64,000 nt of DNA from IMG/VR virus record IMGVR_UViG_3300028864_000014, positions 1-64,000 of that record; one strand, 5' to 3'. The notes under the pieces were generated by a model. The model made no database searches. It was not told where the DNA came from and saw only the letters and a program-made list of their open reading frames with translations. Positions within the stretch are counted from its first letter, which is position 1. Every line of letters starts with the position of its first letter. The translations under genes were made by a program, and so were the position numbers. Below, piece after piece: positions 1,586 to 7,801 of this stretch.

Positions 1586-1914
1586 AACATATCAAATTAT
1601 TCGAAAATAATAGTCAAAAATATTTTGTATATACTATTCAAAATTCTGATGAAGATACAGTAAAAGTAAAATTGTTTGACAGTGCGGAAAGCTGCATAAA
1701 ATATACAATAACATTCATACATGAATATGATAAATCACATAATGAAAATTATGATTGTAAAGATATGATTGATTATGACGAAGTTCTGGATTATTGGAAT
1801 GGTAAATATTATAATGAACCTGTTGATTTTAATTACGAAGAATATGAAGTGGAAAAATTCGAATTATCAGAAGAATTAGAATTATTGAAGTCTGGAAGTA
1901 AATTCAATTTGTAA
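1582..1914 (+). CDS. KFN[LI]-tag family protein
   Basis: N-term MKHIKLFE, C-term SKFNL. Confidence 0.8.
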   Translation: MKHIKLFENNSQKYFVYTIQNSDEDTVKVKLFDSAESCIKYTITFIHEYDKSHNENYDCKDMIDYDEVLDYWNGKYYNEPVDFNYEEYEVEKFELSEELELLKSGSKFNL

Positions 1915-1917
1915 ATG

Positions 1918-2108
1918 TGCTCACGACCAGGCTCGAACTGGCATCTCATTTTTTAGTTAGGTCACTAAACGCGCTTCCTTTTCACCAACTCAATGATTAC
2001 TTTACTCAGTGCATCCTCAAATATACAGTCATTGAACCGAACAAGCTCAACCACATACCCTAACACTAGCTTCGTTTACTAGCGACTGTCCCTTAGTCTA
2101 ACATGAAC
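1918..2108 (-). ncRNA. 191-nt tRNA-like RNA with about 123-nt insert at the variable-arm position
   Basis: Acceptor GTTCATG/CGTGAGC, D stem GACT/AGTC, stem CTAGT/GCTAG with loop AAACGAA, T arm GCCAG-TTCGAGC-CTGGT. Confidence 0.65.
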
Positions 2109-2118
2109 TTTATAATTG

Positions 2119-2192
2119 TGATCCTGAAGGGATTCAAACCCTTGACCCTCGCCTTAGAAGGGCGATGCTCTATTCAACTGAGCTACAGAACC
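2119..2192 (-). tRNA. tRNA-Arg(TCT), canonical
   Basis: Full cloverleaf, anticodon arm TCGCC-CTTCTAA-GGCGA. Confidence 0.93.
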
Positions 2193-2211
2193 GTTGTTTT
2201 TTATTACTCTG

Positions 2212-2243
2212 TAAAAGTAGTGTTTTATTTTGATACTACCAAA
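2212..2243 (-). promoter_or_regulatory. Bacteroidota-type promoter inside the tRNA array, upstream of Arg(TCT) and the 191-nt RNA
   Basis: Minus strand TTTG-N20-TACTTTTA, one mismatch to TAnnTTTG. Confidence 0.5.
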
Positions 2244-2292
2244 CATTTTACACTAAATATAGATATAATTTTTATAAAAGTTTATTTAATTG

Positions 2293-2376
2293 AGCACAAT
2301 ATCAGACTCGAACTGATGAAATCTTTTCAGATGCTGGGTTACAAAGCCAGAGCAATAGCCACTATGCGAATTGTGC
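2293..2376 (-). tRNA. tRNA-Thr(TGT) with long variable arm
   Basis: GCACAAT/ATTGTGC acceptor, U73, loop TT-TGT-AA (C:C at 31:39), variable arm ATCT-GAAA-AGAT. Confidence 0.8.
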
Positions 2377-2384
2377 ATTTATTG

Positions 2385-2457
2385 AGCTTTAGAAAGGACT
2401 TGAACCCTCAACATTTACCTTACAAGGGTAACGTTCTACCAATTGAACTACTAAAGC
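2385..2457 (-). tRNA. tRNA-Thr(TGT), canonical
   Basis: Anticodon arm TTACC-CTTGTAA-GGTAA, U73. Confidence 0.93.
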
Positions 2458-2467
2458 ATTTTTATTG

Positions 2468-2542
2468 TCGGAATGACAAGATTCGAACTTGCAATAACCT
2501 GGTGTCCAATACCAGTAACCTCTCTCTATGGATCGCATTCCG
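2468..2542 (-). tRNA. tRNA-Pro(TGG)
   Basis: CGGAATG/CATTCCG acceptor, CTGGT-ATTGGAC-ACCAG; atypical D loop and A32. Confidence 0.85.
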
Positions 2543-2554
2543 TTGTTTTTATTG

Positions 2555-2626
2555 AGCCAAGGGTGAGAGTCAAACTCACGACATCCACGTTACTAAGGTG
2601 GCGCTCTATCACTGAGCTACATCGGC
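2555..2626 (-). tRNA. tRNA-Thr(AGT)
   Basis: CCACC-TTAGTAA-CGTGG anticodon arm, G1-C72, C2-G71, U73. Confidence 0.82.
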
Positions 2627-2633
2627 ATTATTG

Positions 2634-2708
2634 TAGGACTTATTGGAATCGAACCAATGACGTTTTGCTTGTTAAACAAATACTCTGAACCAACTGAGTT
2701 AAAATCCT
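2634..2708 (-). tRNA. tRNA-Val(AAC)
   Basis: TTTGT-TTAACAA-GCAAA anticodon arm, full cloverleaf. Confidence 0.88.
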
Positions 2709-2722
2709 ATATTCAAAAAAAG

Positions 2723-2793
2723 TAGCCCCAGATGGAATCGAACCATCTCCCAAACCTTGTAATAGTCATACGCTTCCGTTACGCCACAGGGCC
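2723..2793 (-). tRNA. tRNA-Val(TAC), degenerate
   Basis: Good T arm GATGG-TTCGATT-CCATC; weak acceptor and anticodon stems (TGACT-ATTACAA-GGTTT). Confidence 0.55.
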
Positions 2794-2801
2794 AAATTTA
2801 G

Positions 2802-2887
2802 AGCAAGTAAAGGGATTCGAACCCTCGGTGTGATATTATCTTTCTAGATTGGAAATCTAGTGCAATCGACCTCTATGCGACACTTGC
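2802..2887 (-). tRNA. tRNA-Gly(TCC) with long variable arm
   Basis: CTAGA-TTTCCAA-TCTAG, 17-nt variable region, U73. Confidence 0.85.
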
Positions 2888-2908
2888 GTTAATTTATTTT
2901 AATATTTG

Positions 2909-2993
2909 AGCGATAGATGAGATTCAAACTCACGGTGTGCTTTCGCTTACTGGATTGGCAACCCAGCGCCATCGGTCTCTAGGCGACTATCGC
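2909..2993 (-). tRNA. tRNA-Gly(GCC) with long variable arm
   Basis: CTGGG-TTGCCAA-TCCAG, 16-nt variable region with GC-GAAA-GC hairpin, U73. Confidence 0.85.
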
Positions 2994-3029
2994 ATTATTT
3001 ATAATCATTTATGTAACTATCTGATTATG

Positions 3030-3106
3030 TGGAGCTTATGGGCATCGAACCCACCTGTTATTCCTCTGTGCAAGAGAGGCGACCACTCCAAGCAGTCCCA
3101 AGTCCC
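3030..3106 (-). tRNA. tRNA-Ala(TGC)
   Basis: CCTCT-CTTGCAC-AGAGG, G3:U70 identity pair present. Confidence 0.88.
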
Positions 3107-3181
3107 ATTATTAATTGTTTTTATAAAAATCTAAAAATTTTTCAATTTCGTTTTACTTTTCCGAACTATGTTTTTGTTATG

Positions 3182-3268
3182 TCGGGTAGGTGAGATTCGA
3201 ACTCACGATGACTATACGTTCCCTCATGTTCCCAAAACACGTATGCTAACCAACTACACCACTACCCG
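3182..3268 (-). tRNA. tRNA-Pro(TGG) with long variable region
   Basis: CGGGTAG/CTACCCG acceptor, CGTGT-TTTGGGA-ACATG, 18-nt variable region. Confidence 0.85.
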
Positions 3269-3340
3269 ATAATTAAACTATTTTATTTTTTCAAATATCA
3301 AAGAACTCTTTTATATTATTAAATATTACAATAATAATTG

Positions 3341-3399
3341 TCAGGTGAAGAAGAGTCGAACTTCCTTGTGCCTGATCCTGACACTACCACATACACCTG
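3341..3399 (-). ncRNA. D-armless 59-nt tRNA-like element, GAT (Ile) in the central loop
   Basis: CAGGTGT/TCACCTG, 8-nt connector ATGTGGTA, GTGTC-AGGATCA-GGCAC, T arm GGAAG-TTCGACT-CTTCT. Confidence 0.55.
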
Positions 3400-3410
3400 A
3401 TATTTTACTG

Positions 3411-3489
3411 TGACCCAGGAGGGGGTTGAACCCTCATTTTTCATTCCATTATGCACATAGAGTTTAGAAAACTCCGCCATTACAAGGCC
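3411..3489 (-). tRNA. D-armless tRNA-Arg(TCT)-like gene with 23-nt variable insert
   Basis: GGCCTTG/CTGGGTC, connector TAATGGC, GGAGT-TTTCTAA-ACTCT, T arm GAGGG-TTCAACC-CCCTC. Confidence 0.7.
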
Positions 3490-3502
3490 ATTATTTATTT
3501 TG

Positions 3503-3581
3503 TGATCCAGAAGAGACTCGAACTCTCATTTTTCATTCCATTATGCACATAGAATTTAGGAAATTCTGCCACTACAGGACC
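3503..3581 (-). tRNA. D-armless tRNA-Arg(CCT)-like gene with the identical 23-nt variable insert
   Basis: GGTCCTG/CTGGATC, connector TAGTGGC, AGAAT-TTCCTAA-ATTCT, T arm GAGAG-TTCGAGT-CTCTT. Confidence 0.7.
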
Positions 3582-3593
3582 AATTAATTATTT

Positions 3594-3635
3594 AAAAAGA
3601 AAAAACCCAAAGTTGAATAATCATCTTTGGGTTTT
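3594..3635 (-). terminator. Attenuator terminator upstream of the tRNA array
   Basis: Minus strand AAAACCCAAAG-12nt-CTTTGGGTTTT followed by TTCTTTTT. Confidence 0.85.
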
Positions 3636-3688
3636 AACACTATTAAAATATTTTATAAAAATATCAACTTAGATTGTTATCACCCAAA
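3626..3688 (-). promoter_or_regulatory. Antiterminator helix mutually exclusive with the terminator
   Basis: Leader segment TTTGGGT-GA-TAACA (3688-3675) pairs with TGTTA-AA-ACCCAAA (3639-3626), the terminator 5' arm. Confidence 0.75.
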
Positions 3689-3774
3689 TACGCCACTGGT
3701 CTTCCTCCTGTTACGGGAGTAGTTGCAGTTGTTGTGGCTGTGCCTGTTGTGATATGTCTACTAATGTTGTTCAT
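3664..3774 (-). CDS. Putative attenuator leader peptide MNNISRHITTGTATTTATTPVTGGRPVAYLGDNNLS (36 aa, below the ORF-track cutoff)
   Basis: Translated by hand; ThrL-like composition; ATG lies just downstream of the TAATATATA motif. Confidence 0.8.
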   Translation of the reverse strand: MNNISRHITTGTATTTATTPVTGGRPVAYLGDNNLS

Positions 3775-3781
3775 GATATTG

Positions 3782-3792
3782 TATATATTAAA
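3782..3792 (-). promoter_or_regulatory. TAATATATA promoter-like motif for the leader/tRNA operon
   Basis: Minus strand ttttaatatatac-aatatc-ATG; same motif precedes ORFs at 1088, 16044, 50402 and 61242. Confidence 0.55.
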
Positions 3793-4011
3793 AATTATTT
3801 TTTGTTTAAGTTATTTTCTACTTTCTTATATATTATATAAAAAAAGTCATTTTTTTCTATTTTTAAAAATTGATTGATATGATGAACTTTTTTTGAGATT
3901 TATTTAGAGCAATAGAAAGACATTAACTCATATACTCAATCTTGATACACTTTCTTGTAATGTTCAACTACACATTTTTTATATCAATCAATTTATTTTT
4001 TATTTGTAGAA

Positions 4012-4043
4012 CAAAAGTAATACAAAGTTTTTAATCTACCAAA
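4012..4043 (-). promoter_or_regulatory. Bacteroidota housekeeping-type promoter
   Basis: TTTG-N20-TACTTTTG on the minus strand. Confidence 0.65.
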
Positions 4044-4065
4044 TATTTATTGAATTATTTTTCAA

Positions 4066-4509
4066 TTAATACATTAGTCCAACATATTCATGTTCAAATT
4101 CTACATTATATCCTTTTGCTTTTGCATTTTCTATCATATTAATAATATCAATAGTTCTTGAATAATCTCTACAAAATAAATCATAATTATCTTCTAATGG
4201 TGGAGCCAATAATGCTCGATCATTATCCCATGATCCATATGTTATAAACACACCATCAAATGAATCATAATTTTCTAAATATTTGGTTTTTATTCTTTCT
4301 CTTATTGAATCAGGACACAATTTGTCTTCCCATCGTGAAACAATTTTTCCTGTGAAAAAATTACTAAAAATTATTCTTTTAGTAGGTTCTGGTATTCCAG
4401 AATTTTCCATAATAATCCAATTCCAAGTATCTTGATCTACAAGTTTAAATTGTAAATCTCCATCGTTGTCTGTTAATTTTACTATATGTGCAATTTTCAT
4501 ATTATTCAT
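4066..4509 (-). CDS. hypothetical protein
   Basis: 147-aa ORF, tightly packed with neighbours. Confidence 0.7.
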   Translation of the reverse strand: MNNMKIAHIVKLTDNDGDLQFKLVDQDTWNWIIMENSGIPEPTKRIIFSNFFTGKIVSRWEDKLCPDSIRERIKTKYLENYDSFDGVFITYGSWDNDRALLAPPLEDNYDLFCRDYSRTIDIINMIENAKAKGYNVEFEHEYVGLMY

Positions 4510-5700: not shown

Positions 5701-6546
5701 TTATAAATCTCCTAATTCATCTTTTGTTAAACCTAATGAATCAACCAATTTTTGTAATTCTTCTTTATTCATATTAATAATTTTATTAAGAATAATTTTT
5801 TTAGCATTTTCATTTGTAGTACCTTTCATTTGATTAGCTAATTGATCTACACTATTACTAGTATTCACTCCTAATTGTCTTAATAATTGAAGTTTTGGTT
5901 TAATAGAATCAAATAATGTTATATTAATCCAATTTATTGCAGCTTTTTTATAATTTAATAAATTAGTCACAATAGAAATATCATCAGCTTCTAAAATTCT
6001 ACTAATCTTATAATTGATTCTATCATTTATTGATTCTGAAACAGTAGTTGGTGCGGTATTAGTAGTAGTAGTTCCAGTTATAATATTTGCAGATGATTTA
6101 ATTTCAGATATTATAGTGGTAGAATACGTTGATATAGCATTTGAAAATTGGTCTTCTGGATAACTCATCAATGTAAGCAATCTTTTATCTCTTGATCTAC
6201 TAAATATTTCATTAATAGTAAAGTCATCATTTTGTAATTTATTAACAATAGGTTTCAATGAAAAATAAAAATATTTGATACTTTCTGTTAATACTTTATC
6301 AACATCAATTATAGTTTTTGAATTATTTATTTCATTTTGAGTAAGTGATTGACTATTTTTTAAATATGTCTGATATAGAATAGATACATTTTTTTCCACA
6401 TCTAAACTTTTTATAAAAGATGAGAATAAATTATTTAATGATTGTGTTGGATCAGGAAATATTTTATCATACTGAGATTTTAAAAACTCAGAAATAGATG
6501 ATTGTGAACTCTCTGTCAAATAATTATTATAAGATATTATATTCAT
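5701..6546 (-). CDS. Putative head-internal protein
   Basis: CTS-like MNIISYNNYLTES; further [IL]xE sites (ILEAD); helical composition. Confidence 0.6.
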   Translation of the reverse strand: MNIISYNNYLTESSQSSISEFLKSQYDKIFPDPTQSLNNLFSSFIKSLDVEKNVSILYQTYLKNSQSLTQNEINNSKTIIDVDKVLTESIKYFYFSLKPIVNKLQNDDFTINEIFSRSRDKRLLTLMSYPEDQFSNAISTYSTTIISEIKSSANIITGTTTTNTAPTTVSESINDRINYKISRILEADDISIVTNLLNYKKAAINWINITLFDSIKPKLQLLRQLGVNTSNSVDQLANQMKGTTNENAKKIILNKIINMNKEELQKLVDSLGLTKDELGDL

Positions 6547-6547
6547 T

Positions 6548-7801
6548 TTATTTTGTTTCTTTTACTTGTGCTGCTGCTGGTTTTGCTTCTATTTTTTTGA
6601 CATTTTCTGCTTTTTTTGTCATATCTTTACCATCTGGCTTATCACCCTCTTTGAATGTTAATGTATCACCATCTACTTTAGTTATAGTTCTAATTATTTC
6701 TTGATTTCCTCCATCTGGAGTCCAACTAATTTTATCTCCCTCTGTATATTCTGTTTTAACAGGTTTCTCAGCAGGTTTCTCAGCAGGCTGAATTTTAGTT
6801 ACATCAGTTTTCTTTTTAGTAAATTCACCATTAGTACCATTGAAAGTTAATGTATCTCCTTCTACTTTAATTATTTTTTCTTCTACATCTTTATTTAATG
6901 CATCGGAATGAAATTTTACAGTATCTCCAATTTTCAAATCTGTTGATTGTCCAGACTGTTGTTCTTTTGATAAATTTTTCCATTTTTCATCTAATTGTTT
7001 AGATAATATATCTCTATTCTTAGCAACTTCTATTGATGCTGTTTTATCTCCGCCTGCATCGTATATTTTTATTTTTGCATTTAAAAATGCCAATTTAAAT
7101 TCATCTACTTTGTTTGCTATTATAGTAGCTAATTTTGGATTTTTTTCTTGACCACCATATTTAGCTAAAACTCTATTCATTTCATTTTTTGCGACTTCTG
7201 CATCAGCATCAATTATTTGCTGAATAAGTTTAGCTTTATCTTTCAATGCTGATATTGTCATTTTAATATTTGTTCCTGCTTCTTTTGTCTCTGTACTTGG
7301 TGCTATTGTTTCTTTAGCTTGATTAATAGTATTCTTTACATCATTAACTTTGTTTGCAACATTATTAACTGCAGTTGCAACATCAGCTTCATTTAATTTA
7401 TTTTTTAAATGAACTCTTACTTTATTGCTTTCTTTTTTCACGTCATTTTCAGATGAATTATTAGTTGTAGTCTGTTTATCAGAAGAAACAGTTGAAGGAG
7501 CAGCAGGAGCAGAAATTTTAGAAGGAGAAGTAGCAACAGAAGAAGTGGTTGTAGTTGTTGAATTTATTTGTCCCTCAGCAGTTAAATTTAAATCAACTTG
7601 AACTTTTTTCTTAATATCATCATTAATCTTTTTTAAGTATTTTACATATATATCTTGAATTTCTTGACCTCCTTTTACTTTTTTTATATAAGTTGAAATG
7701 GTATTAAATAATTTACCTATAAAGCTAAATATTCCTTCATTTATTGATTTGCTATCATTATGAATATTTAAAAATTCATTCTTTGAATATAGATTTCTCA
7801 T
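6548..7801 (-). CDS. Putative virion protein with two C-terminal SH3/KOW-like repeats
   Basis: INEG and LNEA sites; LKIGDTVKF...KVEGDTLTF and YTEGDKISW...KVDGDTLTF duplication. Confidence 0.6.
   Translation of the reverse strand: MRNLYSKNEFLNIHNDSKSINEGIFSFIGKLFNTISTYIKKVKGGQEIQDIYVKYLKKINDDIKKKVQVDLNLTAEGQINSTTTTTSSVATSPSKISAPAAPSTVSSDKQTTTNNSSENDVKKESNKVRVHLKNKLNEADVATAVNNVANKVNDVKNTINQAKETIAPSTETKEAGTNIKMTISALKDKAKLIQQIIDADAEVAKNEMNRVLAKYGGQEKNPKLATIIANKVDEFKLAFLNAKIKIYDAGGDKTASIEVAKNRDILSKQLDEKWKNLSKEQQSGQSTDLKIGDTVKFHSDALNKDVEEKIIKVEGDTLTFNGTNGEFTKKKTDVTKIQPAEKPAEKPVKTEYTEGDKISWTPDGGNQEIIRTITKVDGDTLTFKEGDKPDGKDMTKKAENVKKIEAKPAAAQVKETK

Follow-up and report, generated by a model that had tools for sequence, protein, structure and literature searches.

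On the minus strand of a large-phage sequence, a short leader open reading frame (ORF), an intrinsic terminator and an array of tRNA genes form a unit that is likely to be a ribosome-mediated (leader-peptide) transcription attenuator with the tRNA array as its output. We place the probability of this reading at about 0.78; it rests on comparative sequence evidence, and no functional data are available. What sequence and comparison show is the conserved ORF, the terminator, an antiterminator that covaries and excludes the terminator, and the agreement of leader residues with the tRNAs of the array. Here we describe these features, the proposed mechanism, its alternatives and its relation to known systems.

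The window, i.e. the whole stretch of 64,000 nucleotides that was analysed, is AT-rich with a G+C content of 25.6%, and its source is a large phage. Encoded in it are a baseplate hub with M23 peptidase, a ribonucleotide reductase and a DnaB-like helicase. Many peat metagenomes and an IMG/VR contig of 235 kb also contain the window sequence. The samples for this clade come from peat and bog-lake metagenomes, and a Bacteroidota host is hinted at by TAnnTTTG motifs in relatives. All features described below for the window lie on its minus strand. The genes upstream of the unit end at 4066 and are followed by a 290-nt AT-rich spacer before the leader ORF.

The tRNA array (2118-3581), delimited with ARAGORN and Rfam, contains in order two Arg-like genes, a 60-nt tRNA-like element, Pro, Ala, two Gly, two Val, three Thr and one Arg tRNA. 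The first gene past the terminator, reading from 3581, is an atypical tRNA-Arg-like gene without a match to the Rfam tRNA model. The 60-nt element at 3400-3341 lacks the D-arm, carries the anticodon GAT and is not called by ARAGORN; its best Rfam score, 21.6 bits against tRNA-Sec, is sub-threshold. Its assignment as an Ile tRNA is not supported, as neither ARAGORN nor Rfam accepts a tRNA at this position. The array has 10 distinct anticodons according to ARAGORN, or 11 with the GAT of the 60-nt element, and an exact codon is present in the leader for 9 of those 11. A cmscan of positions 1800-4200 on both strands at E <= 1 delivered only tRNA matches and three sub-threshold matches to unrelated families. 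No leader family (Thr_leader, His_leader, Leu_leader, Trp_leader and others), no T-box and no other regulatory family was detected in the Rfam scan of this region.

An initial annotation, made without database searches, had listed a TAATATATA motif, an ORF, a terminator and a first tRNA in this order, and all four were confirmed at the minus-strand positions it had assigned to them. The 36-aa peptide it quoted was confirmed exactly, as was the complementarity it had noted between TTTGGGT-GA-TAACA in the ORF (3688-3675) and TGTTA-AA-ACCCAAA at the terminator (3639-3626). Two of its counts held only in part. It had named seven amino acids covered by the array, including Ile; six are supported, and Ile rests on the unaccepted 60-nt element. 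It had further reported an exact leader codon for nine of 12 anticodons; the nine are right, and the total is 10 with ARAGORN or 11 with GAT.

The leader ORF (3664-3774) consists of 36 codons and a TGA stop. The TAATATATA motif is located at 3782-3790, 8 nt 5' of the leader ATG, and is shared with ordinary genes: this 9-mer occurs in 21 copies in the window, compared with 9.8 +/- 3.0 in shuffled sequences, and about half of the copies sit 5-25 nt upstream of the starts of long ORFs. The motif is partly conserved in relatives, and the start context of the leader is the same as that of ordinary genes of the phage. Codons 8-28 (3691-3753) form the putative sensor run, in which 20 of 21 codons specify Thr, Ala, Gly, Pro, Val or Arg, the remaining one being Ile. 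The composition of the leader is beyond chance, as these six amino acids form no run longer than six residues anywhere in the 15,078 aa encoded by 46 long ORFs of the window.

Related sequences were collected by pattern scans of IMG/VR and JGI metagenomes, which yielded 19 distinct variants of the leader region, ranging from near-identical down to about 60% identity. The leader ORF is intact in all 19 and encodes 31-43 amino acids, and the other two sense-strand frames are closed in every variant. The peptides share a common layout, with an M-(K/N)-N start, a variable Thr/Ala/Val run and a near-invariant P-V-T-G-G-R-P block; this run varies in length by multiples of three. Past a short G-rich segment, the ORF continues for another 12-34 nt. 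Here "this run" is the variable central one. The sensor run spans 15-21 codons. Counted from codon 8 through the residue that follows R-P, the six-amino-acid set accounts for 318 of its 331 residues (96%) over all 19 variants, the background share of this set in the long ORFs of the window being 24.9%. The enrichment is absent from the first seven residues of the leader and from its C-terminal part.

Downstream of the 19 variants ARAGORN identified more than 100 tRNAs, all on the same strand and all for Pro, Ala, Thr, Gly, Val or Arg; the arrays of the relatives have the same amino-acid set and a similar gene order. Two observations on Thr codons are suggestive only. The leader of the window uses only ACA and ACT, together with Thr tRNAs with the anticodons TGT and AGT, and in relatives with Thr tRNAs GGT and CGT the leaders also use ACC and ACG. 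Exact tracking of codons by anticodons within the Pro/Ala/Thr/Gly/Val/Arg class was not significant (0.60 versus 0.58 in permuted data, the observed value being reached by 664 of 5000 permutations), which counts against the attenuator reading. A search for the leader-plus-terminator pattern in 185,579 representative bacterial and archaeal genomes, one per species, gave no match; at this stringency of the pattern, nothing points to a homologue encoded by the host.

The intrinsic terminator (3594-3635) is supported by folding and by covariation. It has an 11-bp stem and a 12-nt loop, with the 5' arm at 3635-3625, the loop at 3624-3613, the 3' arm at 3612-3602 and a T tract that extends to 3594 and ends 13 nt 5' of the first tRNA-like gene. 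The fold in which RNAfold forms this terminator has a minimum free energy (MFE) of -43.7 kcal/mol and z = -3.36. A consensus scan missed the structure because its loop limit was 8. Across the 19 variants every cell (100%) of the terminator helix is paired and three of its pairs covary, and the free energy of the hairpin across the family is about -14 to -21 kcal/mol.

The antiterminator is formed by two strands, of which the 5' strand (region 2, 3675-3688) lies in codons 29-34 of the leader ORF and the 3' strand (region 3, 3626-3639) pairs with it. Because region 3 overlaps the 5' arm of the terminator, antiterminator and terminator are mutually exclusive. Covariation was analysed in an alignment of the 19 variants from the G-rich segment of the ORF to the end of the terminator. 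In the antiterminator helix 83.6% of cells are paired, compared with 16-56% in controls with the partner shifted by one to three columns. Both sides change in four of the pairs, with one position occurring as U-A in seven, C-G in six and A-U in four cases, and the covariation score was reached by none of 500 shuffles. The changes are three-way: where the 5' arm of the terminator reads CCCAAA, CCCGAG, CCCGAA or CCGATGG, the ORF segment reads TTTGGG, CTCGGG, TTCGGG or CCATCGG, respectively. The covarying base in the ORF segment frequently falls on the third position of a codon.

When the transcript is truncated upstream of the 3' arm of the terminator, nearly all variants have the antiterminator as their MFE fold. 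In full-length RNAs the terminator stays the MFE structure in most variants, also when the footprint of a stalled ribosome is masked, with the stall placed in the run, at AGA, at CCA or at the stop codon. A thermodynamic switch of the full-length RNA was consequently rejected, as only truncated (co-transcriptional) folds favour the antiterminator. Since in most variants the terminator remains the MFE structure on the full-length RNA despite the stall mask, the switch must be kinetic, as in trpL; that such a kinetic competition takes place is inferred.

The leader stop codon (3666-3664 in the window) always lies between the two antiterminator strands, so that a ribosome at this codon sits inside the hairpin. 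From the end of the region 2 core to the stop there are 15 nt in most variants of the window's class, and -1 to 34 nt over all units. With the ribosome at the stop codon, the region 2 core is at the very edge of the expected footprint, and occlusion by a ribosome at the stop codon alone cannot account for every unit. A conserved 1:2 anti-antiterminator or pause hairpin was not found; RNAalifold gives only a small invariant CCCC/GGAGG hairpin, and region 2 has no upstream partner in the truncated folds. The trpL-like 1:2 hairpin in the window's own MFE structure was rejected as a part of the mechanism because it is not conserved. In the absence of a conserved 1:2 hairpin, untranslated transcripts would read through, which is a point against the attenuator reading.

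A conserved promoter-like element (P1, 3827-3857) occurs only once in the window. It is composed of an A-run, (T/C)GAC, a T-run, a short spacer and AATATATA, and each of the 19 leader variants has it on the upstream side, as do leaders of other arrays; its promoter function is inferred. Used as a probe, the element led to more than 100 further loci. Where it precedes arrays of other composition, a different short ORF follows each time and mirrors its own array, which is the decisive result of the comparison. Arrays of Lys, Phe, Ser, Trp and His tRNAs have leaders such as ..SKHSKSFKSFWSH.., arrays of Met, Glu, Asp, Tyr, Cys and Asn tRNAs have the leader ..YIEMENCNININIDYD.., and a Met/Gln/Ile array has the leader ..EYMIQEQMQQI... 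In an array in which Gln is added to the Thr/Gly/Ala/Pro/Arg set, the leader adds Q. Between classes, the peptides have nothing in common but short framing motifs at the two ends; the sensor region is not shared.

For 29 distinct leader-array pairs, the share of leader residues covered by the own array has a mean of 0.498, compared with 0.288 +/- 0.031 after permutation, and none of 10,000 permutations reached the observed value. For 20 of 20 amino acids the residue is commoner in leaders whose array has the cognate tRNA, and a class-by-class matrix has a dominant diagonal (0.63, 0.81 and 0.74). One unit (L077) matches its own array poorly (0.29). The potential for alternative pairing is likewise found in all classes: when pairing between the last 45 nt of the ORF and the 5' arm of the terminator was scored by duplex energies, 32 of 33 units paired more strongly than 95% of shuffles (mean z = -3.3). 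The antiterminator arm sequences themselves are unrelated between array classes.

The complete 735-kb GenBank phage LR756501.1, a very distant one, has only the odd tRNA-Arg-like gene in common with the window and none of the window's arm sequences. It carries an array of 15 tRNA genes for Arg, Thr, Val, Ala, Gly and Pro, upstream of which are the same promoter-like element, a 42-codon ORF rich in the matching residues, and a terminator; the 3' part of this ORF is a perfect 10-bp complement to the 5' arm of the terminator. Five arrays with five matched leaders are present in this genome. Besides the Arg/Thr/Val/Ala/Gly/Pro array, whose leader is the 42-codon ORF, they comprise a Met/Gln/Ile/Glu array with the leader MNFRIINMIQEQMQQIQNLIGGTISY, an Ile/Cys/Asp/Asn/Tyr array with the leader MKNMVRKYNDYCINDKLKMLIG, an array of five Leu tRNAs with the leader MNNILHINLLNSLCLLGIKLIG, in which all six Leu codons are used, and a Trp/His/Phe/Lys/Ser array with the leader MLQTSKHSKHFSSSSKWFTTFGVETDLLCVS. 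By inference from these comparisons, regulation of arrays by matched leaders is apparently general across a clade of large phages.

With these data the computational checks proposed in the initial annotation can be answered, and each of its comparative ones favoured its reading. Conservation of the leader was confirmed by the intact ORF and the in-frame length changes of its central run, and covariation of the antiterminator was confirmed as well. Tracking of array content by leader content holds at the level of tRNA sets across classes, and is not significant at the exact-codon level within the window's class. The fold comparison gave the antiterminator for truncated transcripts and mostly the terminator for full-length ones. 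Homologous arrays without the ORF or without the complementarity, which it had named as a refuting case, were not found in the clade. Its reading of the locus as an attenuator has strong comparative support, and an effect of ribosome stalling on termination remains an inference.

In the proposed mechanism, transcription would start upstream of the leader, probably at P1, and a ribosome would translate the 36-codon leader, whose sensor run consists of codons for the six amino acids of the downstream tRNAs. When the matching aminoacyl-tRNAs are plentiful, the ribosome would pass region 2 (3688-3675) and reach the stop codon inside the antiterminator hairpin. Region 2 would then be covered and unable to pair with 3639-3626, the terminator (3635-3602) would form and RNA polymerase would halt at the T tract. 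When any of the matching tRNAs is limiting, the ribosome would stall in the sensor run and leave region 2 free; the free region 2 would capture the 5' arm of the terminator once this is transcribed, no terminator would form and the array would be transcribed. The new tRNAs would relieve the stall, which would close a negative feedback loop. Promoter use, translation of the leader, stalling and the direction of regulation are all inferred. The sensed signal may be the abundance or the charging of tRNAs, which cannot be separated by sequence. For starvation and anticodon nucleases, suggested as triggers in the initial annotation, there is no evidence either way.

A bolder reading assigns a modular "tRNA homeostat" with multiple channels to a clade of large and huge phages. 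The tRNA genes would be sorted into arrays by amino-acid set, each array would stand behind its own codon-sampling leader, and each would be transcribed on demand when the decoding of its own codons slows. We regard this, too, as likely, again without functional data.

Evidence from RNA is limited to two peat metatranscriptome runs, each with one low-depth assembler contig of about 150 nt. The first contig corresponds to positions 3691-3546, passing through the terminator and reaching the first tRNA-like gene, which is weak evidence; the second corresponds to 3868-3757. Both would fit read-through transcripts that start upstream of 3868; this is a possibility only, as carry-over of DNA is not excluded. 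A conserved GTTCTTTGA(CAT)nTTG motif occurs shortly before the tRNAs, downstream of the terminator, and could be an internal promoter or a processing site, a possibility that counts against the attenuator reading.

Three alternative explanations were considered, none of which appears to be at all probable. According to the first, the unit is an attenuator whose signal is not codon-specific; it would report translation of the leader as such (ribosome availability or transcription-translation coupling), and the composition of the peptide would have another cause. In its favour, the lack of a 1:2 hairpin makes read-through the default outcome of folding, with termination promoted by any ribosome that translates the leader, the invariant GGAGG-containing core suggests a constraint at the RNA level, and codon tracking within the class is not significant. 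Against it, it leaves unexplained the array-specific enrichment of the leaders, which is seen in at least five classes and even within one genome, and it does not explain why the Leu leader uses every Leu codon. We therefore consider a purely translation-reporting attenuator very unlikely.

The second alternative describes the ORF as a stand-alone micro-protein gene with its own terminator and the tRNA array as transcribed from a promoter of its own; the complementarity would serve only the mRNA stability or the translation-coupled termination of the small gene. This is supported by the conserved N-terminus and the conserved C-terminal SGVLYL-like motif of the peptide, by about equal numbers of synonymous and non-synonymous differences in close pairs, and by the conserved motif between terminator and tRNAs, which could be a promoter. 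It is opposed by peptides of different classes that share only end motifs yet mirror the tRNA set of their own array, by the position of the leader, which is always directly upstream of the array and on the same strand, by the covarying, mutually exclusive helices, which are the signature of a switch, and by the RNA contig that bridges the terminator and the first tRNA-like gene. On balance there is very little to recommend this explanation.

The third and weakest alternative is an RNA-level element, with direct binding of the core or the leader RNA by a protein, small RNA or tRNA in the style of a T-box or a protein-dependent attenuator, the ORF being incidental. It draws on the conservation of the 15-nt core even at synonymous sites and on the predicted small CCCC/GGAGG hairpin. 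Against it, the ORF is maintained with in-frame differences in central-run length in 19 variants and is present in unrelated classes, the core is absent from the leader of the 735-kb phage and from other classes, and there is no match to a T-box or other regulatory Rfam family. We regard it as highly improbable.

The core itself is not accounted for by the leader-peptide attenuator model that we prefer. With the sequence CAGGAGG(A/C)AGACCAG (3696-3710), it covers the (T)GGRP codons, contains GGAGG and is near-invariant in relatives; only the A/C position varies among the 19 variants of the window's class, and the remaining sites are invariant even where a change would be synonymous. It is missing from the leader of the 735-kb phage and from the other array classes. 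An internal GTG start after GGAGG, which would open a 10-codon mini-ORF, was rejected, as neither its spacing nor its frame is kept in relatives.

Leader-peptide attenuators are known to control amino-acid biosynthetic operons, with thrL, ilvL, hisL, leuL, pheL and trpL as examples in E. coli. The phage unit resembles these in having a short ORF with regulatory codons, followed by a terminator whose 5' arm has an alternative partner in the last part of the leader, and in the expected logic by which stalling leads to read-through. Those defining traits of the class that sequence data can address, namely ORF, regulatory codons, terminator and exclusive antiterminator, are all present. With thrL and ilvL it shares multivalency, one leader serving several amino acids. 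Unlike in the E. coli systems, the output consists of tRNAs and not of biosynthetic enzymes, and the leader matches six amino acids at once, with other sets for other arrays. Further differences are the stop codon inside the antiterminator hairpin, the absence of a match to an Rfam leader family and the location on a phage. The phage unit also differs from trpL in the lack of a conserved 1:2 hairpin, a feature typical of trpL and not universal for the class. The initial annotation had ascribed the geometry of thrL, ilvL and trpL attenuators to the locus; without a conserved 1:2 anti-antiterminator the geometry is simpler than that of trpL. Relative to known leader-peptide attenuators, the new features are the tRNA-gene output and the specificity for six amino acids.

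Attenuation acting on the translation machinery has a precedent in pheM, the leader that attenuates the pheST operon for phenylalanyl-tRNA synthetase by matching the supply of aminoacyl-tRNA. Like pheM, the phage unit would be a leader-peptide attenuator on a component of the translation machinery; pheM is bacterial, responds to one amino acid and controls a synthetase, whereas the output of the phage unit is the tRNAs themselves. T-box riboswitches are similar in that the status of tRNA chooses between terminator and antiterminator upstream of translation-related genes. They bind uncharged tRNA directly without an ORF or a ribosome, whereas the phage unit would read it via a conserved frame. 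The tRNA clusters of T4, T5 and huge phages are likewise arrays of phage tRNA genes with polycistronic precursors; in contrast to the known picture of these clusters, the arrays described here are grouped by amino-acid set, each with a matched leader.

In the full-text literature searched, no description of leader-peptide or attenuator control of phage or bacterial tRNA genes was found, and the initial annotation was not aware of a phage tRNA operon controlled in this way. An attenuator-like leader of E. coli pheU was considered and rejected, as the K-12 sequence upstream of pheU lacks a leader ORF and has its promoter right in front of the tRNA.

It is not settled how phage-borne tRNAs are regulated or what determines which of them a given phage has. 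If the attenuator reading is true, this would be the first case of ribosome-mediated attenuation of tRNA genes, with the most multivalent leaders known, and classical attenuation would reach beyond metabolic enzymes to the translation machinery itself. Phages would gauge decoding capacity by means of the ribosome and feed back on tRNA transcription separately for each tRNA group, which would account for the grouping of tRNA genes into arrays by amino acid. The leader sequences would then be a readable record of the codons that each phage treats as limiting. Synthetic biology would gain small, portable sensors of tRNA availability, and work on tRNA-targeting host defences would gain a tool.

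Two further observations concern the organization of the units. In some of them a protein ORF is located between the terminator and the tRNAs, which counts against the attenuator reading. In relatives, the P1 element also precedes large structural-looking ORFs.

The minus-strand tRNA array behind the proposed leader-peptide attenuator begins with two atypical copies of a tRNA-Arg-like gene (3581-3502 and 3488-3408, minus strand), whose anticodon loops have the sequences TTCCTAA and TTTCTAA. Both copies have a very short D region and contain the conserved insert GTGCATAAYGGAATGAAAA, and neither was matched by the Rfam tRNA model. The insert pattern matches 33 IMG/VR loci, and the element is conserved at about 27 of them, the remainder being apparent chance matches within coding sequence. 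Its anticodons across the IMG/VR loci are CCT, TCT or ACG, and it is also found in the 735-kb phage LR756501.1.

The initial annotation had listed isoleucine (anticodon GAT) among the amino acids of the array. This anticodon comes from a tRNA-like element of only 60 nt without a D arm (3400-3341, minus strand), for which the Rfam score is a mere 21.6 bits, against tRNA-Sec (E = 0.38). The loop of the element is not conserved in a close relative.

The Thr, Gly and Pro tRNAs of the window (2292-2376, 2801-2887, 2908-2993 and 3181-3268, minus strand) have a length of 84-88 nt, and their variable regions carry insertions of about 12-14 nt, which is unusual for these tRNA classes; those of the relatives have the same long form with variable-region insertions. 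A tRNA-Pro(TGG)-like gene at about 2540-2466 (minus strand), without an ARAGORN call, is similar to the first tRNA downstream of the terminator in relatives (e.g. locus L026). A stretch of higher G+C content (2100-1920, minus strand, 41% G+C) lies at the array's distal end and terminates in the T-arm-like sequence GCCAGTTCGAGCCTGGT, with neither a tRNA call nor an Rfam call.

The motif GTTCTTTGA(CAT)nTTG is found repeatedly 10-30 nt before tRNA genes, in the window at 3306-3290 (minus strand) and at many loci (e.g. L064, L073, L108, L132 and L177). It is located downstream of the attenuator terminator and also between tRNAs, and could be either a signal for processing or an internal promoter.

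The promoter-like element upstream of the leaders occurs only once in the window. In related phages it also precedes large ORFs of 400-1400 aa (L074-L179, e.g. L079, L082 and L093), which probably encode structural proteins; the element looks like a strong promoter in general use across the clade.

In LR756501.1 (L181-L195) two tRNAs with the anticodon CTA were observed, which, as inferred from the anticodon, would decode the stop codon TAG. An ORF resembling ribosomal protein bL12 is located between an attenuator terminator and the Ile/Cys/Asp/Asn/Tyr array of this phage (sites listed for the tRNAs and the ORF: 690585-690738, plus strand, and about 187800-188300, minus strand).

Positions 1-200 of the window have a G+C content of 52%, compared with a mean of 25.6%. 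The neighbouring proteins (5701-6546 and 6548-7801, minus strand) contain low-complexity, Thr/Ala/Pro/Ser-rich stretches such as TGTTTTNTAPTTV, which, judging from their composition, would use the same tRNAs as the array supplies.
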